Assembly: GCA_004431415.1 (NCBI GenBank)
Contig: QPMI01000517.1
Coordinates: 124,001-188,000 of the forward strand
Direction of reading: 5' to 3'
Origin: Cyanophora paradoxa CCMP329
Lineage: Eukaryota; Plantae; Glaucophyta
DNA length: 64,000 bases
The position numbers were made by a program, and so were the translations under genes. Below, one piece after another: positions 1 through 41,545 of this stretch (the first letter of the stretch is position 1; each line of letters begins with the position of its first letter). The notes under the pieces were generated by a model, which did no database searches, had not been told where the DNA came from, and saw nothing but the letters and a program-made list of their open reading frames with translations.

Positions 1-1600
1 TTGGCTATCCATGAATAAGCCCCCCCTCAATCCACACAGGAGCCGATGTAACGGGGCCTTACACCGTCGTCGTACGGTTTGGCTATCCGTCCGGTCTCCC
101 CCGCTGCGCCGATGCCACGGGGCCACACGCCGTCGTCGAGCGGCCCGGCTCTCCGAGGATAGGCAACCCGCGCGTCGATCCCCCGGGGCCGCAAGGCTCA
201 CCGGGGTAAGATGCCCCCCTGCTGTTCGCTCTCCGCCGCGCGCGCCCTCCCGCCCGCCTGCACGCCGCCCGCCTCCCCATCTCGACCCTCTCATGCCACA
301 CCTTCCTCGCAGGAAACTGGGTCTCCGGCATGATGTCTCTACCCTTCTGTTCTCTTTTCTTTTCCTCGCCCTCCTCCCGCCGGCGGCCAGCCTCGCTCCG
401 GTCCTCGGACCCCTAACTGCACCCACCACCTGGGCTCTCCCCTCCACCCCTATCCTCGAGACCCGCGAGTCTCCTCTCTCTAGCTTCACAGGGGCTCTTA
501 TAACCTCTCTCCTTCTCTCCATAGCCCTCCTCCTTTTCGATCTCCCCCACGTGCCCCCCAGCCCCGCATCATCTCGGGGCCCGCACCGTAACCCAGACTC
601 CCGCCCATACCCCGCCCCATCCCCCTCCCCCCCCGCTCCACCCGGCCCTGGCTCAACCCGCCCCGCCGACGTGTCTGGCGCCACCTCTCCAAGGCCGCTC
701 GCCGCCGCCTGCGCCGTGCTCGTCCGCGCCGGCATCTCCAGACCACCCTCCCCCTCCCCCTACCGCTACCTGGGTACCCAGATCCCCTATTCCCCTACAC
801 GTCCCGCCCTACACCTCGGTCCCCCCGCCGCCGTCACTCCCGTCGCTTTCGTCGCTTTCTGACTCCCTCCCTCCCACCTCCCCCGGCCCCCGCCTCATCC
901 CCCGCCCCTCCGGATCCCACGACCTCTCTCTCTGCCCCTACAACCCAAACGCTTGCCCTACGCCCCTCCTCCTCCGCTCGCCAACGGACACGCACTGCCC
1001 GCCCGCCCCCCCCCCTCCCTATGCGCCCCTCTTTCTCCACGGCCCGCGCAAGCCGCAATTTCGCCGCCGCCGTTCTTCTTCGCTCTCACTGGTTGCCCGC
1101 CCTGCCACCTCCCCCCACGCTTCCGACCCGACCACCTCGCCCGCCCTTTCGGTCCGGCACTCGACTAACACGCACTATCCTCTTATCCCGCTGTCCCGAA
1201 CCCAGCGGCCATGGCCATGTACACTCCCCCGAACCCACCCCCACCCCTACTCCCCCCATGCCCCCAGCTCCTCGCACCCCCACCCTCCCCCGCCCTCTCC
1301 CCCGCCCTCCCCCCTCTCATCAGACGCCCCCTACAGCGCGGCCGCCCCATTATAACCTCCCCAACAACCTCACCTACCCATGCCTTCTCCTCCTCTTTCT
1401 TCTCAACCAAATCTTCTTTCCCTCCCGGTCTCCCCCTCGACCCCGCGCCCCCTACCCCACCTCTCCTTCCCCTGCCCCCCACCCTCCCCTCCCAGCCCCC
1501 CTCTCAGTCTGCCCCAACACGCCCCCAGTCCACGGGCCCGCCCTATCCTGGATGTCTCGAGCTCTCACCCTGACATCAACCCAGCCCCCCCCCCCCCTAG

Positions 1601-4600
1601 CCGCATCCCGCCCCCCCTGGTCGCACCTCCCGCCTCCCTTCTCCAACTTCCCTCCGCCTTTCTGCTCCCTCCCTGCCTATTTCTCCTCCTCCTATTGCAC
1701 CGCCTGACAACCCCCCTCTTCAACCCCACCCCTGCCCCACATGCTCTCCGGGATTTCCTTGCACAAGGACGCCACCGGTTCGGTTCGCCCCTCTCCTCAG
1801 CACGCACACCTCCCCTCCATACCTCCCGTTAGCAGCCCTTCTTCTCCATCTTTACCTCGCGTCCCCGGCCCTCCCCACTATTCTTCAAATCGGCGCCTCC
1901 GCCCGCTTCCTGCTTGGCTCCCTCCCACTCCTCCCTCTCTCTCTCCTCGGGGACCCCCCGCCCTACTCCCCCCCCGCGCCTCCCCCCACTCCACCAGACT
2001 CCCCCCACCAAACCCCCCTTGCGGCGGGGTGCCTCCTCTGCACCCTCATTCTCGCACGCCGCCGCTTCCCCTTCTCGCCCTCTAACCACGCCTTACTTAG
2101 TCTTCTCACCCTCCCCCTCCACCCCCCGCCCCCACCGCTCCCCCGATACTCCCCCATCCTCCCTCCCTACGCTAGCCTCCTCGCCGCTCTCGCCTGGGCT
2201 CAGCTTACTGCAGCCACCCTCAATTTCCCCCCTTTAGCATTCGAACTCCTCCTGACCACTCCGGCCTCCCTAGCGGCAGAATGGCACGTCCTTGTCTGCA
2301 CAACCTTCCACTTCCTAGTAGACCTCCGGCGAGCCCTGTACGAGGCAGCAGACCCGGGCGGAACTCCCCTCTCTCTCTCCCTCATCGCCACCGCCCCACT
2401 CATCCTTCTCCACTTCTCCCGGCCCGAGCCCATCGAATTTGTCAGTCTTATCACTGCGGCATCCCTCGCGGGTTTTGCGCTCCAATCTCTCCTCGATAGT
2501 ATCTCTCCCCGCGGCCCCCTCCTCCAAGCTCCGTACCCGAACGCCGTCCCCGTACCAGTGATTCGCTCCCTCCTCCTCCTTTCCCTATTTACACACACGG
2601 AGACGCGCACGGCCACACCAAGCCCTCCTCCCGCCCGGCCCAGCGCCTCCGCCCTGGCTGTACTCGCGTTCACGCTCGTGCTCGCCGTCTTGTTGTGGAC
2701 CGTCTTAACAAAAATTTCCAGTCACTGTACCTCCCCCCTACCCTGGGGGGTACGCACACGCGGCAATCCCCGATTCTCACCTGCACAACTCACAACCCGG
2801 CCCCTGCATCTCGCCGCCATGGGCCGGAAAAGTGGCAAATCCCCAGCTGACCCCAATATTCCCGAGTCTGATCTGGGAACAGCCCCACCCGACCCAACGG
2901 ACTCCCTAGCGACCTCGCTCTCGACGGCCGCGACCCTCCCTTCCGGATCCCAAGGGCAGTCCGAGCCACCCCTTCCGTCAGCAACTCCCCTCCCAGCCGC
3001 CGAGGGCATCCCGGAGGAAACCACCCACCCTGCGATCTCGGCGGCCCGAACGCAATCAGAACAGCGTTTCGGTCCGGGCCCCACCTCTCTCATCCTCCCC
3101 ATTATCGCTTTCATCACTCACTGGACCACAGCGGCCGTCCAGCAGACAAAGAACAGTTTGTACGGAGCAGTGGCGATCCGGCGCCAGATCTTCTCCTCCC
3201 CCTCTGCTCTGCTGAAAGCCTCCCCGGAGAACACAGCCTCCGGCTGCCGACGCCCCCTCCCAGACCAAGCCCGTAACACCCTCGTCATCGTGGCTCCCTA
3301 CACCTCATTCATGCCGGCCATGCCGCCCGGCTTCCTGGCCCTCGCAGAAGGCAAACTGACAGCCGCAAACCAAGACTACGTCAAAGCAAACCGTGGCTAC
3401 GGCAACAATTTCCTTCGCGACCACCCGACTCACCCAGCACACGGCAAGCTCAACCTGAACGGCGCAATCCCCACTGTCTTCAGCGGCACTGAGCGGGATA
3501 GCCGCCGTACCTACGCGACTCAGGCAGTGGGATTCCTGGTCAGCAACAGCCCCGCCCTGACTCTTTTCCACCAGCTCCCAACCCCACTCCCCAGGTTGAT
3601 CCCATCGGCCACTGGACTCCTGAATTCCAGAACAAAGTACTCGACTGGGCGGCCCAAGACCTCGCCCTCCCGGACCGCAAAGGTGCTCGCGGCGCACTCC
3701 TCGACGACTACCGCGCCCTCCTGGAACCCCAAGCTGACCGCGAACTCTACGAATACGTCGTACGCACTTCTCCTAGCTGCACACCGCACTTGCGCTCACT
3801 CCCAGCCTATGCAGATCCGCCACGCGGCCCCCGGCGGGCCCCTACGCGCAGAAGACGGATCCGCGGTCACTACCACGCTCGCCGAAGTTCTGACGGACTT
3901 CCAACGGTACCTTTTCAACGTTCTCCAGGCAGGCGGCACAGCACCGGACGTCGCCGGCCGCGCCGCAATCAACGCCATGCAAGCCCTCACGTACAACAGC
4001 AAACTCGACGGTCATGAGGCCTTCGTCCTCGTGGATAGCAGCACGCACCGCACCCTGTGCGCGGCAGACCCCGCCAACCAGCTCCCTCCGGCCGAGGCGG
4101 TCATGGCCAGCGCCTTCTTCCCCTCCCTCCTCGGATGCGCTCTCTGCCTCCCGCGCGGCCTCCACTCCGACGATCACCTCCGCAGCGCCTCCTTCTCCCT
4201 GTTTATCCCGGGCTCCACCGCTCCCTCGTTTCAGGCGGTATCTTACATCACGCGCGCCCTCTATCTCCAGGGGATCACGGTCCTGGGCACGATCCACTCC
4301 TCGCTCCCCGCCGGTAACCCAACCCTCGTGGTCGTATGCGCGCTCGACTCCTACGCTTCGCTCCCCCTCCCGTCGCGCCGCCTCTCCTTCTCCGATGACG
4401 GCCTCGCACTCCAAGCTTTCTTCCGCACTTTCAACATCGTCCGCCTCTTTCCTTTTTCTCACCCCATTCCTCGGCGTAACGCTACCCTCAGGGAACTGAA
4501 GCTGCCCCGGTGCTGGTGGAAACCTATGAAATACTACTCACGCCTCCGGCCTCTGATCTCTCACTTGACCTCACCTACGGCGATTTCAACCTCGACCTCA

Positions 4601-7600
4601 CGGTCGCGCTCTCCAAGTGCTGCACTAAGTGCCGCACCGGGCCACACCCTACCGACTGGTTCCACGGGCCCATCACATGCCGGGTGCTCCCCACTCCTGC
4701 TGCCCCCACCCCCACCCGCGGCCCCTCACCTCCTCGTAGGCCAAACGCCAGCGCACTTCCGATGTAATCATGCTGGCGGCTCCCCCGACCCTTGCCTCCC
4801 CGCCTGTATCGTCGCCTTTGATCTCGCGCCGCAAGGCCCGCTTCTAGCACTCATGTACTGGCTGCTGCACGTCCGTAAAAGGTTACAGTCTCACTTTACA
4901 CCTCAGCCTGCCCGGCCCCCGCACCTGGCACATCCACTCCCACCCCTCACCCTCACTCCATTTGCACTTTCTGCACATGGCTCTGGGCGGAATAGCACAC
5001 CCATGCCCCAATTTCAAATTCATAATCGACAGACCCCACAGGCCCCGCGGCCCCTCCAGACAGCACTCGCCGCCTCCGCACCGAGCACATACTCTCACTC
5101 CAACAGCCCTTGCCAGCCGCCGTCCAGACCCCACTCGCCGCCTACCTCCCCCCCCCCGCACACATCGGCCCAGTGTGATCTGCAGGACACCGTCAGCCCC
5201 CCCAACGCCCGCCGCCGCGCTAGGGTCGGCGGACCTGAGCCCGGGGCGGGATCGCCGACGCACCCCTACGCGCCGCCCGCCCTGCCCCCGCCTACGCCGG
5301 CTCTGCACGCCCTACAAGACAGCCTCAGCCCCCCCGACGCCCGCCGCCGCACTACGACCGATGCCCGTCGCTATGCTCAGGCCAACGGACCTGATCCTGA
5401 AGCGCGAACGCCGCCGAGCCCCCACGCGCCGCCCGCCTCGCCCTCGCCCGCGACAGCTCCGCGCGACCTGCAAGAACCTATCAGCCCCCCCGCTGCCCGA
5501 CGAAATACTCAGGCTGCCGAACCTGGGCCTACAACGGCGCCACCACCCGACCCTCGCGCGCCGCCCGGTCGCCCCGCCGCCCGACACCATGCTAGGCCTG
5601 ACGGACCAGAGACTGAGACGCCGTCTCCGATAGCCTCTCCCACGCTGTCCGCCTCGCCTCCGCGGGCGACGGCTGCGCACGGCCGGCAGGAAATGCCGGG
5701 GCCCCGCGCGCCGCCCGTCTTCCTCCCGCCTGCACCGACTATCCCGCGGGACCCTACTACACCGGCTCTCTTGCCCGCACTCGCGCTGGAGCTCCGCGGC
5801 CTGCCGGCGGCTGCCCTACAAGATTCGATCCACTGCCCGGGGCTTAGCGCTTGGGCCGAGGAGCCCGCGCCAACTCCACAGGACTCATCCCAGGTACATC
5901 CCGCCGAATCCGGGCGCGATATGCAGCTGCTGCTGGACCCCAGTGTGCCGTCCGCCTCTCTCCTGCCCGCAACGCTATGCGACTCGCGCGCTGGCCCGGA
6001 ACGGCCGACGGCGCCGGACACCAGAATGACTACCATCGCATTCTGCACAGCGCTCATCCTACGACACCCGGCTTCCCCCCCCCCCATAGGGGTACATACC
6101 ACCTCAGCTCCGCCCAGCCCAACCATGAATCCGCTTGCCGCGGTTCACAACCTGATGGACCTCTCTCGGCAAACACTACGTAAGTGGCTCGACAGCACCC
6201 CCACTCACCGATCCCACTCGCCTGAAGCACCCGCAGAAGATATCCACCGAGAGCTCACACACGTCAACATCCCCGACGACCAGGCGGATGAAGACGAGCG
6301 GGACGAGAACGCTCAAGCCCTTTCCGCCCGTCTTCGCCAGCTGCTCACCGGACTAGGCGGCTCTCCGACAGTAGAAACTTACTCTGATACTCTCCCCAGC
6401 ATCATCGGGTGCAATCCTTGCTACAGCGTCGCTGGTGAAACAGTAGCGGAAGCCTCAGCCACCACCCAGCTCGCCAACCCGGTAGTAGTCGTTCTCAACT
6501 GTGAGCCAGCCGGCGATTACTCCAGCTCAGCTAGCACCCTCAGCTACGCATCGGCATCCCCGCACTCGCCATCCCCGGACCACATCCAGCGTACCACCCT
6601 CGAAGCGGCGGAAGACTGGCGAGCTCACGTAGGATCTGAGCTAGCACGACGCGGCATCTTCCTGGTGCCAGCCACACCCACTTTCTTCCACCTAGCGTGT
6701 ACTGGCCCTCTCGAATGCGGCCTGCAGTCCGAACGCTCCCTCCCCGCTTTCAGGGTCCGTCCCACTGCCAACCTCTTCACCCCCCCTATACTCATACCTC
6801 GCCAGCTCGATCCTCTCCTTCCTCCCGGCCCCGTAGCGCACGGGCGCCGGACCGCAACCGCCCAAATCCTGGCGGGACAACTGCGCAACCTCCTCCACGG
6901 CTACTGCGACCCGGACCGCACTTACGGCGTCCTCGCGGCCCACACGTCCGCACTCCTTCGGGGAGGCGACCCCGTTCTCATCCGCCTCGCTGCCTTAGGC
7001 CAAGTCCCTCTCACGGACCTTCTCTTGGGCGCCCTTATCCTTCTCATAGAAACCAATTCCCCCGATGCCTTCGAGACCTCCTCCCTCGACGCCTTTATCG
7101 AGGCCATCCTCTCCATCCGCCAATTTGGTATAACCTTCGACCCCGACCTCAACATCTCCGAACTCACCCTTTTCCTCCCCCCGAAAACCGCTACCTCCCT
7201 TCTTCTCTGCCTCCCTGACTTCCCCTTCATCCCCTCCACCCTCTGGGCAGCCATCACCCACTCCCGGACACCCTCCCGCCGCTCCTTACTGCTCCTCCAT
7301 CACCCGTTCCGCACTCACCACGACCGGGGCGACTTTGTTCTTCTTCTGGCCCGCTCTTCCGATCTCTTCCCCGACCCCCCCACCCACTCTAAACGAGAGC
7401 CCTTTCACGATAGGAAATTCCGCACCGAGAATTTTTCCGCCAAACTGGACGCTCTCCACAACCGCCTCTCCCCCTGCCCCCTCTTTGGACTTCTCGCCGA
7501 CCCCGAGTCCCTACCATACATTCTCCTTCTTTTCCCCAAGGCCGCGTACTCCATGCTCCCACCTCAAACTTCCCTCCCACTCACCACCTTCCCCACTCCC

Positions 7601-10600
7601 TTCCACTCCTGCGAATCCCACCTCCCCTCTCCGCACCCGTCCCATATCACGGCCCGCCCCCGCCTCCTGTCCAACCCTAAAGCAAAGGACGACTACGATG
7701 ACTTTCCGGGCACCCGCCTCTGGGAACTCTTCGGTAGCGAAGGCGACCAATACCTCCCGCTATCCCCCGGCCTCCTCGCCGCCATCATCTGCCCCCACTG
7801 CCTCGCCTCCGACTTCTTCTATCGGGATACCTCCTGGATCCACCCCGCTCACCGGTGCCCGGTACGCCGACATCACTCTCCCACTCGGTGCCGCCCCACG
7901 CTTACCCCCCCCGCAGGCGGCGTGACCCTCCTCCCCCCTCCTCCCTCCTCCCCCCCTCCCCCCCCTACCATCCCCTTCGACACCCCCGCCTGCTCCCCTC
8001 CCCGCGCCGACGTTTGCGCCGCGTTTATGAATACGACAAGTGGCCTCCCCTGCCTCACATACACACCCGGGCTACCCCCTCGAGCTCGAAGCCGCGATAG
8101 GGCTATCGCACCTGGGCCCGTACCGCGAACGTCATTGGGCCCCCGCACGGCGCCCGATTTACCCTTGCCCGCGTCAGCCCCGCTCGTACCGGCAGACCCC
8201 CGCGCGCCGCCCGCCCTGCCCCCGCCCGCGCCGGCCCCTCGCGACCTGCCGACAGACCTTAGCCTCCCCGACGCCCGCCGCCGCGCTCGGTCCAACGGAC
8301 CTGAGCCTGAAACGAGACCGCAGCCGAACCCCCGCGCGCCGCCCGCCTCTCCCCCGCCTCAGCCGTACCAGCGCGACGGACCAACGCCTGCAACGTTCCC
8401 ACCGTCGTGCGCGTCGCCCGCCTCATCCTCGCCCAAGCCGACCCCGCGCGACCGGCCGGAGGACCTTAGCCTCCCCGACGCCCACCGCCGCGCTCGGGCT
8501 GACAGACCTGAGCCTGCAGCAAGGTTGCCGCCGAGCTATCACGCGCTGCCCGCCTCGCTCCCACCCACGCCGACTTTGCGGGACCTGCCGGCAGACCTCA
8601 GCCCCCCCGGCGCCCGCCGCCGCGCTAGGGCTGACGGACCTGAGCCTAAGGCGAGACCCCTGCCGGCCTCCCACGCGTCGCCCGCCTCGCCCCCGCCCCA
8701 GCCGGACCCGCGCGACCTGCAGGGAGCTCTCAGCCTCCACGACGCCCGACGTCGGGCCGACGGACCAGCGCCCGAGGCGATACGCCTCCGAACGCCGCCC
8801 ACCTCACCCTCGCCCAAGCCGACCCCGCGCGACCGGCCGGCAGACCTTAACCCCCCCAACACCCGCCGCCACGCTCGGGCCGACGGACCTGAACCTGAAG
8901 CGAGACCGCCGCCGACCTCCCACGCTCCGCCCGCCTCGCCCCCGCCCCAGCCGGCCCAGCGCGACCGGCAGGAAGACCTCAGCCTCCCCGACGCCCGAAG
9001 CTGCGCCTGGGCCGACAGCTCCGAGCCTGCAACGAGACCACCGCCGAGCTCCCACGCTCAGCCTGCCTCGCCCCCGCCCACGCCGGCCCCGTGCGCCCTG
9101 CCGGACGCCCTCAGCCTCCCCGCGGCCCAACGCCGCGCTCGGGCTGACAGACCTGAGCCTGCAGCCAGCTCGCCTCCGAGCTCTCACGCACAGTCCGCCT
9201 CGCCCCCGTCCACTCTGACTTCGCGGCCCCCCCGCGACCTGCACTACACTGTCCGCCCCTCCGATGCCCGGCTCTGCGCCCATGCTGACGGACCTGGATT
9301 AGCCGCGAAACCGCCGACGGGCCCCAGCACGCCGCCCGTCCCGCCTCCGCTCCGGGCGCCGCACGATCTACAAGACGCTGTCAGCCTCTCCGCTGCCCGA
9401 CTCCGCGCTCGCGCTGACGGACCTGGATCTGCAGTGCAGCCGCCGCCGGGCCCCGGCGCGCCGCCCGCCCTGCCTCCGCTCGAGCCGGCGCCACCGGGCC
9501 CCTGCGCGCCTCCGGTTCCGCCCCCGCCCTCGCCGGCGCGGTGCGCCCTGCAGGACGCTGTCGGCTTCCCCGCTGCCCGGCGCCGCGCCCGCGCTGACGG
9601 ACCCGGACCCGACGTGCAGCCACCGCCGAGCCCCAGCGCGCCTCGCGCATCGCCTCCGCCCGCGCCGCGCGACCTGCAGAACACTGTCGGCCGCCCCGCT
9701 GCCCGGCGCCGCGTCCGCACTGACGGACCTGGACCTGAAGAGAAGCCGCCACCGAACCCCAGCGCGAACCGCGCCTCGCCTCCGCCCGCGCCGTGTGACC
9801 TGCAGGATGCTGTCGGCCGCCCCGCTGCCCGGCGCCGCGCCCACACTGACGGACCTGGACCTGAAGAGAAGCCGGCGACGGGCTCCAGCGCGAGCCAAGC
9901 CTCGCCCCCGCCCGCGCCGCGCGACCTGCAGGATGCTGTCGGCCGCCCTGCTCCCCGGCGCCGCGCCCGGGCCGAAGGACCTGAACCTGAAGAGAATCCG
10001 CCGACGGACCCCAGCGCGCCGCCTGTCTCGCCCCCGCCCGTCCCGTGCGACCTGCAGGACGCTGTCGGCCGCCCCACTGCCCGGCGCCGCGCCCGCACTG
10101 ATGGACCTGGACCCGACGAGAAACCGCCGCCGAGCCCCAACGCACCGCCTGGGTCGCCCCCGCCCGCGCCGCGCGACCTTCAGGACGCTGCCGGCCGCCC
10201 CGCTGCCCCGCGCCGCGCCCGCGCTGACGGACCTGGATTTGAAGAGAAGCTGCCGCAGAGCCCCAGCGCGCCTCGCCCCTCGCCTCCGCCCGCGCCGCGC
10301 GACCTGCAGGACGCCGCCGGCCGCCCAGCTGCCCGGCACAGCGCCCGCGCTGACGGACCTGGACCTAAAGTGAAGCCGCCGCCGGGCCCCAGCACGCCGC
10401 CCGTCTCGCCTCCGCCCGCGCCGGCGCCGCGCGACCTGCAGGACGCTGTCGGCTTCCCTGCTGCCCGGCGCCGCGCCCGCGCTGACGGACCTGGACCTAA
10501 AGTGAAGCCGCCGCCGGGCCCCAGCGCGCCTCGCGCATCGCCTCCGCCCGCGCCGCGCGACCTGCAGAACACTGTCGGCCGCCCCGCTGCCCGGCGCCGC

Positions 10601-19600: not shown

Positions 19601-22600
19601 GGCACCGCCGGCTCCGCGCTGTGGATCTCAGCAAGCTATGCAGCGCACCGCCAGGCGGATTACGCGTTTGACGGCCGAGTAGCCGGCGCTCGCTTTGACT
19701 TCCCGCGCACGCGCGAGCGCCTCATTGTCCTCTCACTCTACGTGCCGGACTGCGGGCACGACAATTTGCAAAAAGAGCTCCACGACCTCACCGAATACCT
19801 GACCGCGAAGGTCGCACCCGACATCCACGAACCTGACTGGCAGACGCATCTCCTGGTACTCGGCGATATGAATAGCACATACTCTCCGTGCAACGACCGG
19901 ATCACTGGGGGCAACCGGCGCACTGAAACTACCCCCCCGAACTCCTACGCAGAAATATGGACCCTTTTCCGCGAGACCTGGGGTCTTTGTGATACCGGAA
20001 CCCCGGGCGATTTCACACACGTTTCCCGCCACGCCGACTTTCTTGACGACCAGGGCCACCGCCCCCTCCTGGACGCCGCCCGCATCGACTACGCCCTTGC
20101 CTCCCCCACTCTCGCGGCCCGATCACTAGGGACTCGCACACTCTATGTCCCTGGCCGACCGTCCCCTTTACTCACAGCCGACCATCTCCCCGTACTTGCG
20201 ACCTTCAAAACCGAAGGCGTGCTCTCTGCCCCCCCTACGGAGCCCCGCCAGCCCCGACCCCAACCTCTCCCTCCTCTCTTCAACTATGCCGCCCAACCTG
20301 CACCCATCCGGCTTGCTTTCAAGCTCGCTGTCGAAACTTTTCTCAATAAACACGGCCAGCGGTATATCCAGCTCCTTCTCACTCCCGAGAACAGCCCCGA
20401 CTACGCCCAACGCGCCACGAAATCCCACCGCTCCCTCCTCTGTGCTATCGCCCAAAGTATCAAGTCCGTCGCCCACTCTCAAGAATTCTCTACTGCTAAA
20501 GTCCTCCAACACCGCGTCGCTGCTCAGGGAGATATGGCTAAGTTCAACCATCTATCTGCACTGGACGCTGACGACGAACAACTCGTTGGCCGCGTTGGAC
20601 AGGCCTTACACGACTGGGCGCACCAAGGCTCCACAGACCACCCGCCTGACGAAACTATCCGGGCTGTCCTCCGGGACCTTCCCAAAGACGTGACGGACAT
20701 CCGAAAAGCTGCGGGCTCGGACACCACACTGGCTTTCTGCCCCTCCCTCCTCGCTTTCCCCGACCCTCCTAATTACCCTGAATTCGAGAATGGTACCATT
20801 ACAGGCTCTGAAATCGCCGAGTACCATACTCAACTAAGTACATGGCACTTACAGGCGCGGGCCGCCCTGGACAATCATCGCCGTGCATATACCGAAGCCG
20901 ACATTGCTCGCAATATTGACACCCGCCGCCACCTCCTGTCCCACTGTCGAAGTATGGGTCGGGCTATTCAACTCCTCCTCTCCCGTTTCCGATCCGCCCC
21001 CCGCCTATACCTTACCCGCACGGCAGCGGGACTACCCGAAGTGCTCACCGATCCCAATGAAATTAAACGCGCACATCTGGATCACTTCAAAAATTTCTGG
21101 CGACTCCGCAAGGCTGCCCCAAACCTGGATGCCATAGCTACGAAATTCGCGGACATTGAAAACGGCGCCTGGTTGGGCAGATTTTGGAAACGCCAGTACC
21201 GACCCCTTTCCCACTTCACCCCCGCCGTCTGGGACGGACTAATGGCCATGCCAGAAGACCCCGAACTCGATCGCCTCATCTCGTCCCTGTCCAATGGCGC
21301 AGGCGGTCCCTCCGGCCTCACGAACGGAATGATTAAAATGCTCTGGTCCCCCCTCCGCCTCTCCAAGACGGAACGCCAGGCCTTAGCCGCCTCACACTCT
21401 ACAGACGAGATCACCAGCTTCGAGTCCGCGGCTCACTGGACCACCTCGCGCGACGCCATCCGAGCTCTAGTTCAATCCACTCTTCTCGGCCACGTGCCCG
21501 ACCACGCACTTCGCGGTCAAGTCTACGCTATCCCGAAACGTGATAATTCAGCAGATCTTGCCGATCTCCGCCCCATCACCCTTCAAGAAGTCACCTGGAA
21601 GCTGGTCACGGGCCTCCTGACCCACCGCATGGAAGACCGTATTGATACACATAACATTCTACGCGGCCGCAACTATGGCTTTTGTCGCCGCGAATCTACC
21701 GACCCTGTTCTCTACGCCCTCCGATCCTCCCTCGAGGACGCGCACCAGTTCAAAAAGCCAATCTTCGGCGGCCTGGGGGATATTGCCAGCGCCTACGACA
21801 GTGTCTCCTGGCATAGCCAAGAGCTCAGCCTTAATCGTATCCAACTCCACCTCCATCCTGAAGGGAAACGATACATAGCCCTCCACAAAAAAGCAGCTCA
21901 GCACCGCACGGCGTGCATCCTTACCCCCCACGGCCGCACGGAATATTTTCAAGTCCCCTGTGGCCTCCCCCAAGGAGGCATCGAAGCCCCTCTCCACTGG
22001 CGCATTTTCTTCGACGCCGCTCTCACCGCCATCGAAGATCGAGCGACTCAGTCCAATTTCGGATACCAACTCGGGCCGCACCGATCTGACCCTACCCGCC
22101 CCCGTTCCCCCCGCCCACCATGCCCTGGCGAACCCCTCTACTTCCCCTCCGGTCCCTGCCCCACAGTCTCTGTGCTCGCATACGCCGATGACACCACCAT
22201 GCTTGCCAGCTCGGCTCAGGGTCTCCAACATATGCTTGACTGGCTGTCCGAATTTCTCCATATCCATGGCATGAACTTGAACGCCAAAAAGACGGAAATT
22301 TTCCACTGGAAACCCCCCCGATCCGAAGCGCCAGTCAAGAGCAAATACTATGTCGGCGTCGGCGATTCCAGAGCTGAGGTTGGCCACATCCTCTCCCCCA
22401 CAACACCATTCCGCGTCCTCGGCGTCCAGTTTACTGCGAACCTGTCTTGGACCCACCAAGTCCGTCTACTCAAGTCCCAGCTCCAGTCCGCAATCTCCGT
22501 TCTAGCCACAAAGAAGATTACCGTTCACGAATTCCAAGTGATACTACACCGGGTTCTCTTCCCTAAACTGGCATACCCTCTCCGCATCATGACCTTAACG

Positions 22601-22717: not shown

Positions 22718-25700
22718 CCGTCATCCAACGTCAACAGCAGTGCGTCGACGAGCGCCTCCGCCAGGAACTAGCCTCTCACACATCATCACTCTACGGCCAA
22801 ATATACCGACAACGTGTCCTCGACACCCAGGCCCGATACGGGCTTCCCCTTCTCCCACACGAATATCCGAACCTCCCCTCGGGGCCCCTCACACTACAGA
22901 AAAATATTACGCTTGCCATCACGGCAGACCTGACCTCCACCTCCCATCACATCCTCACAACGTGCGACTCCTGGACACATGGCCTCCCCTCCCGCCGATC
23001 CCATCTTCGACGAGAATATATTATATCAACGCAATTGTCGCCCCTCACCCTCCAACAAGCCGGTCAGCGACTCTATCGCTGCGGCCTCCTCACAATCCGC
23101 GACATCACGGCCCCTGACGGCTCCCTTGCCGAATGGTCCCTCCTCTGGAGTCACGGCCGTGTCCCGGCATACTACAAACGTGCCCCTCCTGGTGGGACGC
23201 TGTCCGCGAAGAACTCTCTCTTCCCCGCCCCTCCACCCGGTCCCCTTTCCTCCCCCGCCACCCTATGCCTCCACCGCCCTCTATCCCAGACATTCGTCGC
23301 TCTCTCCAAGCTAACGCCGTCCTTGCGGGACTAAACCTTGGCGATTTTGTATGGACATCCCAAGGCCTAGTTGGCCGCGTCGTTGGGAAACCCCCGATCC
23401 CGGACGAACACCTGGACGAACCGGCCTCCGAGGACCCTGACGCGGACCCCAACTGCCCCCGGGATTCAGAGTATAACTATGGGGTGGAACTCGTCCATTA
23501 CTGCCTCACCCCATATGATGGCCTCTCCACGCGCGACCCCGGTCTATCGGCGCTTGAGCTCGACCCCGCCTGGCGTGAACGCAGACTGGAATTCCAATTT
23601 TGCCCTCACCCAAAATACTGCGGCTCTGAACAGCTTCATCGCGAGCTGGGCCTTTCTACGACTGCTTGCCGATGGGTCGAGTACGCATCTCACGTCCGCC
23701 GAATCCCGGCAGGCTCGTCGTGCGAATCGAAGGGCTGGTCTCCGAGCCTCTCCAATCTCAATAGGCCGGTGCCCACCCGCTCCCGGCAGCTGCCCGACTC
23801 CACCTCCGCCTTCACATGCTCCCACTCTAGAGGGCAGCATCCCCCCCGTGCTCAACCCACACGCGCAGCTAAAAAAGCCCGCCTTGACCCCTCCTCAGCT
23901 ACCCCTCCTGCTCAATATGACCCCGAACTCCCCCCTTCCAACCTCCCCCGCGAAATCACACACATTGGCTTCATCGATCTCTGGCTCCGGGAAACTGACT
24001 GGTGGGACTCTTTCCGAGCGGAGGCCCAAGCTACCAATGTTGCCCTCGAGAGACGCCCACGCCTTATGACCCCCACATCACAAGCCGACCGCGCCTTCTA
24101 TGAATCCCCGGCCGGGCTCGACTTCCTTTTCATTACCTCCCGAGCCCTTTTCGCAGAGCTCTGCCCTACACTCCGCGCACTAAACTCCCCGCCCCTTCCC
24201 TCCGGAACTACTCCCCGGGTAATATACACGGACGCCAGCACACAAAAACAGGGCTCCGCCTCTGTCCGAACCACTTACGCCGGCCTTGCACCCCTCGAAA
24301 ATAATCCCGACCTGCCTGACAAAATCGAGTTCGCCCACCGCCTCCCCGGCGTCCAACATAACGTGAACCTGGGAGAGCTAGCAGGCACAATCTCCGCAGC
24401 ATTCACGTATTTCGGGCCCACGGGCGGGAAAATTATCACGGACAGTCAGAACACTATCCGAGCCCTGACAGCCTTCGCCTTTCAAGACCCTTCATCCTTC
24501 TCCCATCCCATCAACTTCCGCACCCTGCTCCGCCGAGAAGACGGGGCCCTTCTCCTCAACGCTCGAACGCAATACGCCATTCGTATCGCCCAAGACCCGA
24601 ACTTCCAAGTCACGCTTCAGTGGGTCCCCTCTCACCAACCAAAGACCATCCCGCGGCCACCTGCAACGGCTCCGACACCAACGACGACCCGCCGCCCGGC
24701 CCCCTCTTCCCCCCGCCGACCCCGTGTCCCCCGCAGCGGACCAGCTGCCCCCCTTCCTACCGCCCCGCAGACATTCCCTGCCTCGGCTCCTTACCACTAT
24801 ATTGGTGGAATGGACATCCCCGACGCCCGACTCCTCTTTTCGGACGACTCCTCCCCGCCCCTCCCTCCGTCACTATTCTCGTCCCTCCTCCCGCCTCGCC
24901 GGCACATTCGCACATATATCCTAGCTGACAGCCCCGCCGACTACCATTTCCTCCGCTGCCAAGCGGACCTTGTTGACTATGTAGATGCCTCCGAGAATAC
25001 CAACACCCACCTGGTCCTGGACCTTGTCCCCCTCGCGTCCGCCAGACTTGAACGCGCCTTCATGGCGGAGGACACCGTCATCTGGAACCGCTGCATCCGA
25101 CTTCCCAAAGCTCATACTCTTTTTCCTTCCGACGAACACCTGACTATCGTCTCGGACTGTGACATCCTCCGCGCCTACTCCGCTTTTCTTGCAGCCTTAG
25201 GACGCAGAGACATCACTCACAACATCTCCTTCCAGTGCTGCTCCCCTCCCAACCCAATCTTCCTTCAACCACTCCCCGAGGACGCCCCTGATGTTGACCA
25301 CCCTGATCCTGGGCCTACAAGGAAACTCGCCCTCGACTATTACTTAGCCCACCCTAGGGGCTCCGGCCCCACCTGGCACTTCTACCCCACTTCCCTCTGC
25401 AAACCCGCTGTCCCCGCCGACCGTGACACGCCTCTCCCCGCCTGGTACTGGGACGAGGACCTTACACTCGCCCCCACCTCCCAGACCGAGGCTGGCACCC
25501 CTATGGTCGCGTACCACCGTTGCGACCCTGGCATGTGGGGCATCCCTATTTCCTCCCTGATCGCAGAACAATGGGCACGGGGACCCGCCCTCTCCTGCCC
25601 GCACTGCCACCCCACCCCCGCCCCGCCTGGCCCCCCACCCACGTTCCCTCTCCGCGACCAAACCGGCGCCCTTCCTGTCTTATTCGAACGCTATGGACGC

Positions 25701-28700
25701 CGAGCCATCCCCTACTCAGCTGCCATCGACCCCGACGGCCCCAGGTATGATCGCCGAGTACTTCCCCTCCTCGACGGCATAAAATCTCGCCTGGCTGCCC
25801 TTAAAGCGGCCCCCCTCTCCCTCATCGACCCCAACCCTCGGTCTGGGGCCCACCTGGCCACACCCGTTCTCCTCGCACAACCCATACCTGCAGAACCCGT
25901 CGACGCTTTCTTCAGACTTCTCCAAAACCGCCAAGTCTCCTTCCGCCTGCATGCCCCGACCACCCCCAAGTGCCTCTTCCTCTCGTCCTCCCACGCAACC
26001 TCGATCCTCATGGGCACAGCCCCCACTGCCCTTTCTATCAAAGCCCGCGCAGGCCAGCCACAACTGGACCGACCCTACGTCCCGCACCCTTTCTCCCCAA
26101 CGGAATACGATTATATTCTCCTCCCCCTGCCCCCCTCTGGGTCCCGACCCTGGCGACTAGCAATCATCTCGGCCCGCCTCCGCGAAATCCGCATCCTGGA
26201 CGTCACCCGCAAACCCGCCTCCGACGTCACGGCCCCTCTTAAAGACTGGGTCATCAACTGGTGGACGGCGACTCTCCGCCCCGGCGACTCCTCCCCACGC
26301 TCGGCCTGGAAGTACGACACCAGCACCTTCCCCACACAAGCCTGGAAAAACGTTCACACGGGTGAAGACGCTCTCTTCGTCATGACCGCTGCTGAGTTCA
26401 TTGGCCGCGGTGAGGAAGTCCACCTGTATGGCAAAGGACGGGGCCGCCCCATCCCCTTCCACGCCCCCATCTACCGGGAGCGTTGGGCGGCCGCTCTCCT
26501 TCTCCGGGACCCTGAGGTTCTCCTGGGGACAGTCCAGGCCAACGACCCGGCATTCACAACAAAACGACAGCGCATGACCCCGCGCACCAGCTCCCGCCCT
26601 TCCCAGCACACGGCAGCCAAAGCCCGCCGTCCGGTTAGACGCAAGCGAGACCCCACCCCTCCTCCCTTCCGTCCTCCCCTCCCCCCCCCGTCCCTTACAC
26701 CGGTAACCCCCCGGTCCCCCAATTCCCCTCCCTCCTCCCCGCAGCTCCCCACCCCCCCCCCACCCTGCCCTTCCCCACCCCCACGCCCCCCGGCGCCCGA
26801 GGCCCGACCAACTGCTTCCCCAGGCCGAACCCCCGCTCACACGACTGAATTTCCCCTCCCTCGCCCCCTGACGCTGGCGGAGAAAAGTTGGCTGGGGAAT
26901 GCCTTCCGGTTTGCAGACAATGATTACTGCGCGGAGCAAACTCTCATGTCGAAACCCCCCTCCCACCCGCCCCCCGACCTGACCCTCATCGCCACTCCCT
27001 CATTCGACGAGGCGACCTTATCCACCTCCGGCCGAATGCCGCCCTCAGCCTCCCCCTCGTGGAAGCCTTCCTTGACATGCTCTCCTCCCGCGAAGCCGCC
27101 CTGGCCTCGCCTCACCCTACCTACTTCCTGTCGTCCAGCTCTTACCCCGCTAGTGCAGCCTCCCAATTTGACTCTCGGGGCTCTGCCCCCTCCCCCTGCA
27201 CCACTACCTTCCCCCCGGACGCCTTCTCGATGCCCGCCTTGTCCTTGTCCCCATCCTTACCTATCGCCCCACTCATCATGCCCCACCAGCCCCCTCGCCG
27301 ACCCTTCCCTCAGGCAGATCCCGGCACCCTCAGGGCCCCCCGGGACACTGGCACCTACTTGCCTTATTTCCTCAGACGCGCTCGTTCTACATTCACAACG
27401 GCTCCCTCGACGTCCCTGATCACCTTGTCTCCTTTGCACAAGACTTGGCGGCCACTTGGAGTCAACGCGACTCTGGCTCTCCCCTCCCCCTCACTCCATT
27501 CTGCAGATGGACCTACCTACGCCCGGAGACATCCCTCTCCGTTCTCCAGCCTCCCAACAGCACGGCCTGCGGCCCTCTCCTCCTCCTCACAGCTGACCTA
27601 CTCAGTCGCTCCTCAGCACTTGCCCCGTCGGACCTGCCCCGCCCCCCAGCCTACATTCAGGTCGACAATGCTGCGCTCCGCAGATACCGTGAATATATTG
27701 CCCTCAGCCTCTGCTACGGGTCCGTCACCCTCGACCCTATATGCTGTGGCCCTGCCCTCCCGGCCCTCAGACCCCCACCGACCTTCCCGGGGCGCCCCCG
27801 ACCGCCACGCCGCCCCCCAGTCTCCACCGGCGGCACCCTCCCTACCCTCGACTCCCCACCACCCTCCCCCGACCGCCCAGCCCTCCCGCGCTCCCCAACT
27901 GTGCTTGAGTCTACCCCGCCTCGCCCTGCAGGGCCCGCCACCCCCCTCCCTCCCGGTGCTCGCTACGCCCAAGAACTCGCCTCTCAGCTCGCCGACCTGG
28001 CCCGCAACGAAGCCTCCGCAACAGCACGCCGTCTCTTCCGGCCGTCCCACGTGACCCCACTCGAGGCGGCGACCATCCTAGCTGAAGCCGCTCACCGCGA
28101 CGCCGCCCAGCCGCCACCACGGTCCGCCAAAGCATCTAAAACGGCCGCAAAGAAAGAGGCGGCCAGGACCCCGGCCAAGAGCCGTATCTCGAACCCAGCC
28201 TATACTCCTGACAACTGCCACAATGACGCCGTTGACAAGCTCGCCAAAACGGCCCCAGACGCCCCCCTCTCAGCCCTTCTCTTCATTCCTCACAGTTTCA
28301 AATGCTTCCTCATCCGCGTCGGCCTCCCGCCCCCGTCATCCCAAGGCCCAGTTCCAGGAGCCGAGCCTTACAGAGGCAGACTCCATGCATACCGCGTTGA
28401 GGGGGACCCCCGCTCTCACTTCCTAGCCGAAGCCTCCCTCTCCCAATACCTCGACTGGCGCCAGCTTCGCAACGCTGGGGCCGTCCTCAGCAATCCTCAC
28501 GTTACCCTCGCCCCAGCCCTCTCCCTCGTGTCCGACAAGCCACCGGACCGCCGTACCCCCACAGGCGATCACCTCCGCAAAGTCAGATTCCAGTGCATTC
28601 TTGGAGGCCTCCCCTCCCTCACCATCCGCCTCCTCCACGACCCCGACCTATACGGCCCTCTCTTTCCTGACGGTATCGCCCACTGCCCCTTCTGTCACCT

Positions 28701-30704
28701 CCCCCCCACCCCTGCCCCAGTCCCCGAGGACCCTACTTCCCCACCCCCACCCTCCCCGCCCCCTGCCACGTGCACCCCCCCGGGCTCCCCCCCGCCCTCT
28801 TCCCCACCGAGGGCCGCAGACCCCAGACAGCCCGACCCTACAACCCACCCCCCCGAAGACTTCATTCACATATTTACGTGCCCCGCCGCTCGCCTCCTCC
28901 TCCAAGCTTTCCAGGATGCACTCGTGACCTTCCTCCGCACCCGGGTTCTCCGCCACTCGCCCAAACCCTTAGGACACGACGACACTATTTTTCAACTCTT
29001 TCCCTTCCTCCGCCTCGTCTCCCCTGACCCCGCCTCTCCCCTCCAATCCGCCCTCCTCTCCCCCACCGAAAATCCGGCCCTTTTCCGCCCCCCAGGTCTT
29101 ACCGATACCCTATGGACAAAGCTTAGCCCGGCCTTGGCTGACATACTCCCCTTCCCCGCCCCTGCCCTCCTGCGCCTCGGTACCCCGGCAGGATTGCCCG
29201 CCCTCTGCGCAGCCCTGGGCATCAACAAGACCACCACAATGTCAATCCAAAAAGATTTAGCGCTACTCCTCGACCAACACCTCCGTGCGATCTGGAGGGA
29301 CCGCTGCGCCCGCAACCACGCCTGGGAGCTCCGACAAGGCATCACTGACAGAACCAAACGTCGATACCGCAAACATGCCGACACCAAACCCTCCCGCTCG
29401 CCGCTAGTACAGCCGCCTAGTCCCCCCCTCCCCCCCCCCCCCCCCGCCCCCTCCCTCCATGATACCATCTCCATCACTGACTTCTGCTGCGAATTGGACT
29501 CGGAAGGCCAACCCTGGGTTCTCCTGGAAAATATCCGCCAAGCAATAGCACGACTCCCTGCCGCCCCCTCACCCCAGGCCGCCCCCTCCCCTCAGGCCCC
29601 TCCCTCCCCCCAACCGCCCGATGCAGGACCCACCGCCGGACATCTGACTTCTCTTGCACCTGTGGCACCCAATTTGCCTCCGCAGCTGCCCTCCAGGCCC
29701 ACTCCGACGCCAGACGGGGAAAGTGCCCCGCTCGCCCAGAGACCACCTCATACTCTCGACCTGCCTCCCAACCTGCTGCACCCCCAACGCAGCCTTCCCA
29801 CAAGAACCCCGACAATGGCACCCTGCCCGCTCTGCCCGCGGGCCCTACGTCCGCTACTCAACCTTCCAAGCGCCCCGCCCCAACGCTCCCCCTGGCCCCT
29901 CCCTCGAAACGAACTCGCCCGTCGCCTGCCTCACGCAAACGGACAACCGCTACTCCCCCCGCCCCGGCACCCAAACGCCCGCGCCTCATGACCCCTCCCC
30001 TTCCCGCCTCTGCACCCGCCCCACCCGTACCTACGGCAAAAAGAAAGGCAGCCGGTCGCAAGACCCCCAAGCGCGGGACCAAAAAAGCGCGAACGGTGTC
30101 GATACCTGCTGGACAACCCACAATCACGTCCCTCTTCGCACCTGGAGTGTACAAACCACTAACGACGCTTCAAGTAGCCGACTCTCCCCCCCCCTCCTCG
30201 CTTCAGCCGGCCCCCCCGACCGGGACCCCGCACGGTGCCGCCCCGCTGCCCCCTACGGTTCCTCCCCCAGCCCCAACCGACTCACAAGTGCCGAACCCCT
30301 CGTTGACTCCGGCCACCCCTATGGCTTCGGCCCTCCCCTCGGCTTCGGCCCCCCCCTCGGCTTCGGCCACCCCATCGGCTTCGGCCCCCCCCCCGGCTTC
30401 GGCCACCCCATCGGCCTCGGCCACCCCTCTGGCTTCGGCCACCCCCCCTACTCAGACCGACCCCTCCCGACCCCTCGCGACCCGCCTCGCCTCCGCACTC
30501 CCCGCTCTCTGCGCCGCCTGTCAGTGCCCACGCTCACTCCACTCTGCCGTCCCGGCACCGCTCCCTGCCCTGCCCCGCATCCGCTGCCCACCCCCTACCG
30601 CTGCCTCCGCCCACTCCCTCTCCTTCCTCATATCTTCCTCCTACCACCTTCTTCACCTCGACAGAACGGGACACCGATTAATCGGGGTCCTGGGGCGCAG
30701 GTGA
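22609..30704 (+). CDS. Continuation of element A polyprotein (post-RT region, split RNase H, two Ulp1-like domains, CCHC finger, basic tail), broken by about 5 indels
   Basis: Frame hops near 22615, 23186, 26990, 27178 and 29700-29790, mostly in homopolymer runs. The pieces align with element B: QCQILDAVW/QCQELDRIW, RVEGDPR in both, CPFC..EDFIHIFTCP/CALC..ETLEHVLTCP, IWRDRC..WE..GIT/TWAARC..WEK..GIT. Confidence 0.8.
24219..28250 (+). CDS. Split RNase H domain of element A
   Basis: IYTDAS (D 24231), LGELAG (E 24375), ITDSQ (D 24441), WVPSH (H 24633). The final helix HNDAVDKLAK is displaced to 28219-28248. Confidence 0.75.
25880..26500 (+). CDS. Ulp1/SENP-like (C48) domain 1, catalytically degenerate
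   Basis: VDAFFRLLQNRQ..CLFLSS..YDYILLPL..PWRLAII..IRILD..PTQ..DALFVM follows the C48 motif order but lacks the catalytic His and Cys. Confidence 0.6.
27000..27720 (+). CDS. Ulp1/SENP-like (C48) cysteine protease domain 2
   Basis: IRRGDLIHLRP..LVEAFLDML, LLDARLVLVPI, GHWHLLAL (His 27346), FYIHNGSL, LQPPNSTACG, LRRYREYIAL. One frameshift near 27178. Confidence 0.75.
30323..30445 (+). repeat. 18-bp minisatellite (ggcttcggccmccccmtc)
   Basis: About 7 tandem units encoding ASAPPS/ASATPS. Confidence 0.9.
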
Positions 30705-30973
30705 GGAGGAGGGAGGAGGCAGAGTGAGGAGGAGGAGGGGTGGCGGAGCGGCGACAAGGGAGGGCGGCGGACTGCGAGACATTTCACTTCCAGGGCTCAT
30801 GAGGGATGGAGGAGTTGATCAAGGGGTGGGCGCGCGGGTCTGGTTACGGCTATCACCGAAAACCATGGCTCCCCCACTCAGGCGAACCTCCCATACTGAG
30901 CGACCCATGGCCGGCACCTCGCTAGCATCTTCGGCTAGATAGATGACCGGTCGGAAGGGCGCGTCACGTAGAA

Positions 30974-31031
30974 CATTGATACATGTGCCGTGGTGTATCA
31001 ATGCGACGTCCACTTTTGCAAAAAAAAAAAA
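30974..31031 (+). terminator. 3' stem-loop and poly(A) tail of element A
   Basis: cattgataca..tgtatcaatg perfect 10-bp stem, then A12 at 31020-31031. Confidence 0.75.
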
Positions 31032-37918: not shown

Positions 37919-39464
37919 GTCAACAAGTACCTCGACGACCTCGGCGCGATCCCGTCCGAGCCTGACCGGAACCCCGACAGTAGCTACTCCATCGACAAGT
38001 GCAAGGTGCCTCTCTCTCTCTCTCTCTCTCTCTCTCGCGCGCTCCCTTCGTCACGCCGCAACAGGGGAAGCCCGTCCTCTGGAAGAAGACCTCGCTTGCC
38101 CTCGCCGACGACGACGTCCTCGAGTTCGGCGGCCTCCTTCACAAGCTTCTTAAGCTCGACGCCGTAAGTGGCCCTCCCTCCCTCGCTTCCCCTCCCCCGG
38201 CCCGTACCCCTCCCCCTCCCCCCCGACTCTTAGCCCCGTAGCTTCCCTCCCCGGCCCGTACCCTCCCCTCCCCCCGACTCTTAGCCCCCGTCGCTCCCCT
38301 CCCCGGCCCGTACCCGTCCCCTCCCCCCGACTCTTAGCCCCGTCGCTTCCCTCCCCGGCCCGTACCCCTCCCCTCCCCCCCGACTCTTAGCCCCCGTCGC
38401 TCCCCCTCCCCGGCCCGTACCCTCCCCCTCCCCCCGACTCTTAGCCCCGTCGCTTCCCCTCCCCGGCCCGTACCCCTCCCCTCCCCCCCGACTCTTAGCC
38501 CCCGTCGCTCCCCCTCCCCCGGCCCGTACCCCTCCCCCTCCCCCCGACTCTTAGCCCCCGTCGCTTCCCTCCCCCGGCCCGTACCCCTCCCCCTCCCCCC
38601 GACTCTTAGCCCCCGTCGCTCCCCCTCCCCGGCCCGTACCCCTCCCCCTCCCCCCCGACTCTTAGCCCCCGTCGCTTCCCCTCCCCCGGCCCGTACCCCT
38701 CCCCCTCCCCCCCGACTCTTAGCCCCCGTCGCTCCCCTCCCCCGGCCCGTACCCCTCCCCCTCCCCCCGACTCTTAGCCCCCGTCGCTTCCCCTCCCCGG
38801 CCCGTACCCTCCCCCTCCCCCCGACTCTTAGCCCCGTCGCTCCCCTCCCCGCCCCCCCCCCCCCCCCGCCCCCCGCCACCCCTCGGCCACCCCTCGGTCT
38901 AACGCGTACATCAGCTGCAGGAGGACACGAAGTCCCGCGCCTCGCGCGCCCGCACTGCGCCCCGCGCCAAGAACGACTACGTGCCCACCGAGGATGCGGC
39001 GGCGGAGGCGGTGGCGGAGGATGAGGAAGCCGAGATCGTCGAAGCAGCTAGCCCCACGGGCCGGGTGCGCTCCCTCCTCCTTCAGTATGCTCTCCCATCC
39101 TGACTCTCGGCGCTCAGAACCCGCGGAACGTCCTCCTTCGGCTCAACGGCAAGGACGTCGCTACGGCTTTTACCGGCAGTCCCAGCCAGATCGACGGTTG
39201 CATCAAGGTTGCCATCGGCCACATCTTGGACGCGAAGTACGACGGCCTGCCGATTCCGTACCCAACCGACAAGGTGAAGACGCTTCGGCAAGCGGCGTCT
39301 TCAACGCGCGCATTCGACTGGCCCCTCAAACAGATCCGACTCGTGCGTATTGTCTTCGCTCTCCTCCTGACCTTCCTGACCTTCGCTCGCAGGCAAACGC
39401 GACGTCGCCCCCCGTCAAGCCCGTCAAGAAGCCCGTCAAGCCCGTTGCCAAGAAGCAGAACTGA
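37919..39464 (+). pseudogene. 3' remnant of a CACTA TnpA/TNP1-like accessory gene with 4 introns
   Basis: Exons ~37919-38005, 38065-38163, 38921-39064, 39118-39342, 39393-39464 splice in frame (all phase 0). LPIPYPTDKVKTLRQAA...FDWPLKQIRL resembles the C-terminal domain of EnSpm TNP1-type proteins. Confidence 0.7.
38180..38850 (+). repeat. ~55-60-bp C-rich minisatellite inside an intron of the CACTA gene remnant
   Basis: About 11 copies of cccgactcttagccccgtcgcttccctccccggcccgtacccctcccct between GTAAGT (38164) and CTAAC..CAG (38920). Confidence 0.92.
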
Positions 39465-41444: not shown

Positions 41445-41507
41445 GGTCTCGAAGGCCTCCTTCGGGTCCCGCGTCCACTCCAGGATCTTCTTGCCCCAGT
41501 ACATCCT

Positions 41508-41545
<38 letters not shown>

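Follow-up and report, generated by a model that had tools for sequence, protein, structure and literature searches.

Long interspersed nuclear elements (LINEs) are generally assumed to stay short and simply built since their reverse transcriptase (RT) has to be made from the very RNA on which it then acts. Human L1, for example, is 6 kb long and has two open reading frames (ORFs) divided by stops, an antisense promoter with ORF0, internal splice and poly(A) sites, and cis-preference. In Penelope-like elements that keep introns, the copied RNA carries functional introns, and retroviruses use their unspliced RNA both as genome and as mRNA for the polymerase, with spliced RNAs for the accessory proteins. 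Dualen LINEs reach, by the figure of the initial annotation, the low teens of kb and are not known to carry a spliced 5' gene cassette, and we know of no example in which stops arise only by splicing. According to PMC9977147, the Dualen/RandI LINEs of Chlamydomonas, for which it cites Kojima and Fujiwara (2005), are defined by the possession of both a restriction-like endonuclease (RLE) and an apurinic endonuclease-like (APE) endonuclease. Here we analyzed 64,000 nucleotides from the glaucophyte Cyanophora paradoxa CCMP329 (assembly GCA_004431415.1, contig QPMI01000517.1, positions 124,001 to 188,000 of the forward strand; hereafter the window, from whose first letter all positions are counted), and found that a LINE core in its first 31 kb is preceded, in one and the same reading frame, by a cassette of spliced genes. 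We consider it moderately probable that this region (~230 to 31032) forms a single LINE, at least 30.8 kb long, which depends on its unspliced RNA being translatable as far as the RT.

First, we examined the reading frame itself. The plus-strand frame whose codons start at positions with position mod 3 = 2 (the giant frame) contained no stop codon over 1601-22714 (7,038 codons) and was bounded by stops at 1598 and 22715, in good agreement with the initial annotation, which had described it as open over 1601-22717 and as remaining open through spacer-like DNA. The remaining two plus frames contained 228 and 143 stops, respectively, counted over 1-31031. When the region was divided into segments, the giant frame had no stop in any of them, whereas the other two frames had 5-55 per segment, except in the two shortest spacers. 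The number of stops to be expected was computed for each segment by first-order Markov resampling, which gave 4.8 stops in 1601-2818, 7.9 in 4601-6100, 1.3 in 13657-13914, 4.3 in 13915-14680, 1.5 in 16075-16279 and 9.7 in 18141-19340, as well as 17.7 and 5.2 for the two stretches that hold tandem arrays. In total, approximately 29 stops were expected in the non-repeat spacers (approximately 52 when the arrays were added) and none was found, and chance can thus be ruled out as the origin of the open frame; the persistence of openness through spacer-like DNA is far above chance. C-rich composition alone was also considered as a reason for the open frame, and was rejected on the basis of the same Markov expectation and of the many stops in the other plus frames. 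The first ATG of the giant frame lies at 2819. No 2A-like NPGP motif was present in the giant frame, and an Rfam search of the whole window gave no match.

The open frame is preceded by a C-rich leader (230-1600, plus strand), in which every frame is closed (3-4 stops per frame), the giant frame included. A strong strand skew, with C in excess over G, sets in at approximately 210-230, at the beginning of this leader, and ends at approximately 31000, at the tail of the element. Just 5' of the C-rich domain, at 42-155, there are two 48-nt direct repeats with a spacing of 66 nt, which are 77% alike and have no match in Rfam.

Second, the part of the giant frame upstream of the LINE core was found to contain a series of gene modules, spacers and tandem arrays. 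On the plus strand, module A (2819-4600), which has a coding-like codon-position signature and no known domain, is followed by module B1 (6101-7925), by tandem array 1 (8190-11640), whose 126-132-bp units each encode 42-44 aa of Pro/Arg-rich sequence in the giant frame, and by gene B2 (11888-13656), which has three introns and corresponds to the published model tig00020952_g16489. A spliced transcript of the minus strand (13915-14679) comes next, and then, again on the plus strand, gene C (14738-16074; models tig00020952_g16491, tig00020571_g11502 and tig00020849_g14654), tandem array 2 (16280-18140), whose 132-bp units are ~70% identical to those of array 1, and a spacer without codon periodicity that is nevertheless stop-free (18141-19340). 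The main periods of both arrays are all multiples of three. A codon-position composition resembling that of the APE and RT regions (low GC at the second position, high G at the first) was observed at 3000-4200, 6000-7800, 12000-13200 and 13800-16200, and was missing from 4802-6000, 7802-8400 and 18002-19200. B1 (6101-7861) and B2 (11702-13660) encode protein paralogs in the giant frame (30% identity, E=1e-23), and both end in a CxxC-x15-17-H-x4-C motif, which in B1 is located at 7790-7858. Minus-strand ORFs of 750 aa (9368-11620) and 690 aa (16234-18306) also run through the two arrays, and are probably a by-product of a stop-free, GC-rich sense frame.

The cassette proteins were searched for relatives in several ways. 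Modules A and B1 had no Pfam match at E up to 1; with regard to the ORF1p of two-ORF LINEs, which is recognisable by a coiled coil, RRM and CTD or by CCHC knuckles, B1 and B2 have the terminal Cys/His motif but belonged to no Pfam family and no Atlas cluster, and an Atlas feature search with B2 and C gave no usable match. No third B-like paralog was found by BLASTP, and a metagenome scan with the B family gave no relatives. AlphaFold models of B2 (from an alignment of four rows; pLDDT 31) and of C (from a single sequence; pLDDT 38) were both too poor for fold comparison.

Third, expression data revealed how the cassette genes end. Contigs of one DNA run (X1) and of three RNA runs from three different studies were placed on 11650-16270 (4,621 letters). 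Seven GT..AG joints with introns of 50-78 nt were observed in RNA contigs of the three runs and in none of the X1 DNA contigs, and these joints match the published gene models. Three of the introns are in B2 (11976-12041, 66 nt; 12515-12592, 78 nt; 13595-13644, 50 nt) and three in C (15518-15572, 55 nt; 15601-15662, 62 nt; 15922-15977, 56 nt), all on the plus strand, and one is in the antisense gene on the minus strand (14426-14479, 54 nt). The two internal introns of B2 are multiples of three and stop-free. The final one shifts the frame, and the spliced frame, derived like the others by coordinate arithmetic, meets a stop four codons on, at 13654-13656. Similarly, the 55-nt and 62-nt introns of C jointly restore the frame, and the last one shifts it, leading to a spliced stop at 16072, 31 codons on, as in model P0005. 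In B1, where splicing is predicted by homology, a donor identical in place to that of B2 directly follows the Cys-Pro codons; the predicted terminator intron has 55 nt (7862-7916), beyond which the spliced frame would close with a stop at 7923-7925. B1, B2 and C therefore have no stop of their own in the genomic frame and end solely through a frame-shifting last intron; without splicing, the frame continues through the following module and eventually reaches APE-RT. The antisense ORF, in turn, is in exact codon register with the giant frame, and its intron holds an in-frame stop that is removed by splicing. The fact that B1 and B2 share this terminator-intron design at just 30% identity indicates that it has been maintained for a long time and did not arise by a recent accident. 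In a limited literature search, a 21-kb stop-free frame through spliced genes, one of them antisense, was not found described for LINEs.

The giant frame then continues into the core of the element, which was clearly recognized as a LINE. An APE-type endonuclease (Exo_endo_phos; 19343-20150, Pfam E=1.2e-05) lies N-terminal to a LINE-type RT (RVT_1; 21530-22433, Pfam E=2e-18), both on the plus strand and in the giant frame, and the element closes in a poly(A) tail of twelve A (31021-31032), which begins ~315 nt beyond the last ORF piece and belongs to a 3' untranslated part at 30705-31032 (plus strand). Among solved structures, the closest to the RT were R2 proteins, with weak similarity. A word-index protein search with 19001-22714 gave no match, and relatives came from an exhaustive HMMER search, which yielded 3,554 of them. 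The single close one was P0007, an uninterrupted ORF of 3,720 aa on a metagenome contig of 11.9 kb (L001), which is colinear with window positions 19310-30683 in five pieces. A metagenome scan with the APE-RT alignment gave no relatives, and no record was returned when P0001 and two of the ORF2 pieces were looked up as exact products.

Behind the RT, the rest of ORF2 is present on the plus strand in four pieces (22617-30704), colinear with residues 1101-3716 of P0007. Alignment to P0007 placed the frame changes at 22617/8, 23160-23187, 26582-27880 and 29397-30444, and the overlap of the open frames narrowed the last two to 27169-27417 and 29478-29989. Since P0007 is uninterrupted and colinear across the breaks, the 8 kb behind the RT are one ORF in this family, with four breaks in this copy. 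The pieces thus chain to 30704 as initially annotated, with four frame changes instead of the approximately five indels assumed there. The view that these indels are mostly homopolymeric did not hold: no run of at least five identical bases occurs in the overlap window of the first break, and the second was aligned to 23160-23187, away from the sole C5 of its window (23252). Judged from these letters, and from the upstream part, where all 26 runs of at least seven identical bases are in frame, simple assembly error in homopolymers is a poor explanation of the breaks. Introns were also considered for the first two frame changes, and were rejected because the alignment to P0007 passes through both sites without sequence being lost or gained. 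With four breaks behind the RT, the copy at this locus is probably not autonomous.

Few domains could be assigned in this remainder. The region 24219-24639 (plus strand, in a frame other than the giant frame) gave a weak Pfam match to RNase H, which spans profile positions 5-123 only, and an RNase-H-like end motif was found 3.6 kb beyond it (28216-28248, plus strand); the stretch between the two halves is colinear with the intact P0007, and the split thus seems to be a feature of the family. The only other motif of the ORF2 tail is a CCHC knuckle (CxxC...HxxxC; 28681-28890, plus strand). No Pfam match was obtained at E up to 1 for the ORF2 tail or the spacer at 18141-19340, and a PDB sequence search with the 2,600-aa tail gave nothing meaningful. 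Neither Pfam nor PDB sequences revealed an R2-type RLE in the tail of the element or in P0007, although a very divergent RLE could escape sequence methods. Residues ~2624-2729 of P0007, corresponding to window positions ~26582-27880, showed a faint match to Ulp1/Peptidase_C48 (E=0.039, below the cut-off), and the pieces of the window itself had no Peptidase_C48 match in Pfam at E up to 1.

To see how the cassette behaves elsewhere in the genome, copies were traced for the part of the element between 11650 and 20200. Three published gene models of the EukProt set EP00741 match the window at 97-100% identity. B2 and C are found two gene numbers apart on each of three contigs, and their order is thus conserved: tig00020952 (g16489 and g16491, 100% identical and presumably this locus), tig00020571 (g11500 and g11502) and tig00020849 (g14652 and g14654). 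The C model of tig00020849 extends further into array 2, with 95% identity to 17369-17611 and in the giant frame, and the APE described here recurs on that contig as g14656 with 98% identity; a fragment of the RT at 98% identity is located on a further contig. In run X1, 163 DNA contigs with 90-100% identity were placed on the same 4.6 kb. The copies at 97-98% identity suggest recent spread, and variants in B2 and C were synonymous in 11 cases and non-synonymous in 5. The cassette is therefore multi-copy, under constraint at the protein level, and associated with this LINE in more than one location. The initial annotation had named as a contrary outcome that other copies would start only at ~19000 and that the upstream modules would occur independently; this was not seen within the family, and cassette and APE are neighbours on tig00020849. 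In one X1 DNA contig, positions 15546-16093 were replaced by 31 other letters, a deletion variant of the cassette that may be the copy with the early-ending C model tig00020571_g11502.

Taken as one unit, the element could be explained as a composite non-LTR retrotransposon. The core would be a 12-kb single-ORF LINE composed of APE, RT, RNase H, a large middle part without assignment and a CCHC tail, 5' of which a cassette of 17-19 kb would have grown, consisting of A, B1, B2, the antisense gene, C and the two arrays of 42-44-aa repeats. The cassette genes are expressed as ordinary short mRNAs with introns of 50-78 nt, and the full-length unspliced RNA would be both template and messenger for the RT. 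A ribosome starting at the first ATG (2819) could reach the RT only if no stop intervened, and selection would thus purge stops from the frame. Such a rule would account for the lack of stops in introns, spacers and arrays, for repeat units in threes, for an antisense gene in register, and for frame-shifting introns as the only terminators. Intron retention would lead to an RT fusion and splicing to free accessory proteins, and splicing would thereby set the ratio between the two, as frameshifting sets that of Gag to Gag-Pol. Of this scheme, we observed the open frame, the splicing, the terminator introns, the multiple copies and the conserved order of genes, and we infer the translation of the unspliced RNA, the mobility as one unit and the roles of the cassette proteins. 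It is likely that all 31 kb move as one LINE. With the four breaks read through, the potential ORF would extend over 1601-30704 (~9,700 codons, or ~9,300 from the first ATG). The original proposal of a LINE of at least 31 kb with a potential ORF of 9,000-10,000 aa is thus retained with regard to the APE/RT core, the frame that begins 17.7 kb upstream and the coding length, but has to be modified in that the upstream part consists of separately expressed, spliced genes, one of them on the minus strand.

Several observations weigh against a single unit. RNA contigs occurred in discrete blocks (~11790/11860-13745, 13915-14679 and 14677-16187), 13665-13819 was uncovered in two of the three RNA runs, and run X22 contained the cassette genes, but of the words sampled from the LINE core (18150-24149) it contained a fraction of just 0.05. 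These blocks and the scarcity of core words indicate that the abundant RNAs are short, gene-like messages, probably with their own starts, rather than RNA of element length. No long unspliced transcript was seen among the RNA contigs on 11650-16270; as contigs drop rare forms, such an RNA may nevertheless exist. Further points concern the ends and the relatives of the element. No target-site duplication was found, in that 1-2900 gave no match of at least 9 nt to the 30 nt after the tail, and the 5' end may be at ~230 or outside the window. In P0007, the ORF opens 12 residues ahead of the APE and is preceded by stops, and thus lacks a 5' cassette; element B, a neighbouring LINE of the same kind, is also without a cassette in this copy; and the cassette proteins match nothing known in the Pfam and Atlas searches. 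Finally, the breaks are unevenly distributed, with four in the 8 kb behind the RT and none in the 21 kb before it, which the model leaves unexplained.

With regard to the transcripts, it was also observed that RNA contigs of the antisense gene and of gene C meet head to head within ~15 nt (14677-14693), and these contig ends suggest a shared bidirectional start inside the element.

Part of these observations would fit a LINE of the size usual in the family (12-13 kb) that starts between 18141 and 19340, behind an independent multi-copy gene cluster or other repeat, either because the LINE targets the 132-bp array or because the block was copied by segmental duplication, the shared frame being partly luck. 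We regard this, the main rival explanation, as unlikely. The absence of the cassette from P0007 and element B agrees with it, as do the in-frame ATGs that the spacer directly preceding the APE contains in frame 2, the separate transcript ends of the cassette genes (one of which is on the other strand), the lack of a duplication joining the two ends, and the presence of cassette and APE together on only one other contig. However, it does not account for the absence of stops in one frame over 16.5 kb, in which introns, spacers, arrays and an antisense gene are included, or for the dependence of B1, B2 and C on splicing for their ends. Frame, skew and coding strand run unbroken into the LINE, and by our estimate an in-phase junction with an open spacer would arise by chance in a few per cent of cases.

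A dead LINE accompanied by domesticated genes appears even less probable. According to this explanation, the read-through design belongs to the past and the open frame is a young relic, so that only the cassette genes matter today, as host genes or as selfish multi-copy genes. It draws on the four frame breaks behind the RT, on cassette genes that are well expressed in a run from which the core is nearly absent, and on the mostly synonymous variants in B2 and C. A relic should decay evenly, however, which is at odds with the distribution of the breaks on the two sides of the RT, and all of the 26 runs of at least seven identical bases upstream of the breaks are in frame; the recent spread suggested by the near-identical copies also speaks against a dead element. 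A plain giant polyprotein gene, in which 1601-30704 is all exon and splicing has no role, would suit the open frame and the coding-like codon signature of A, B1, B2 and C, but is very improbable and, as sole product, contradicted by the spliced RNA forms assembled in three runs, whose proteins end early, by the spacers without codon periodicity (4802-6000, 7802-8400 and 18002-19200) and by the antisense spliced transcript inside the frame.

If the single-unit reading is true, LINEs are able to host an extensive and evolving collection of genes with introns, and the locus would be a natural example of a mobile element whose two protein outputs depend on whether introns are retained or spliced. 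The constraint that is thought to keep LINEs small would seemingly be satisfied here in another way, with stops cleared from 21 kb and splicing in place of stop codons. Tentatively, we suggest that this may be the largest LINE known to us (at least 30.8 kb, ancestrally with ~9,300 codons in one frame) and possibly the first known with a retrovirus-like plan, in which the unspliced RNA would be genome and fusion messenger, terminator introns would release accessory proteins, and growth would proceed only by in-frame, stop-free additions. Other elements of this type could then be searched for by a long stop-free frame over introns, a frame-shifting last intron as gene end and tandem units in threes. 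For annotators, it should be kept in mind that the published gene models at this locus are parts of a repeat family.

The surroundings of the element contain further repeats. Element B, a LINE of normal size (31334-36807), follows immediately on the A12 tail; it encodes an APE (31334-33022) and an RT (32893-36807) in overlapping ORFs that differ in frame, and its RT is 33% identical to that of the element described here. Farther downstream, there are a tandem array at 38177-38875, whose copies are ~90% alike and follow each other at offsets of ~54-55 bp, a group of repeats of roughly 1.3 kb that occupies 49696-55892 (77-89% identity), and a dispersed duplicate (41445-44224 and 58685-62346; 73-84% identity).

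Among the known systems with which the element was compared, L001 is the nearest: P0007 shares 49% identity with the element in the APE-RT region and remains colinear with it over the entire 2,600-aa tail, and L001 has a comparable C-richness of the strand and a similar 3' end that closes in an A-rich run. On the other hand, L001 measures only ~11.9 kb, its ORF is unbroken and it has no arrays, and its 5' leader has no counterpart in the element. Among 150 RT relatives that were compared, none shares anything with the cassette. Dualen/RandI elements are also large LINEs of algae that combine APE, RT and RNase H with additional domains, but the RLE present in Dualen was detectable neither here nor in P0007; the element is thus not a Dualen by the defining feature of that clade, unless a very divergent RLE has escaped. 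Human L1 differs in that splicing is a defect there and not a gene-ending device, and in having no multi-gene cassette, whereas it resembles the element in an antisense transcript from within the sense element and in spliced and prematurely ended RNAs; its RT acts on its own coding RNA, which is the rationale proposed here for the open frame. Penelope-like elements and retroviruses belong to other classes, with GIY-YIG or integrase machinery; the former resemble the proposed plan in a copied RNA that keeps its introns and the latter in the division of output between spliced and unspliced RNA.

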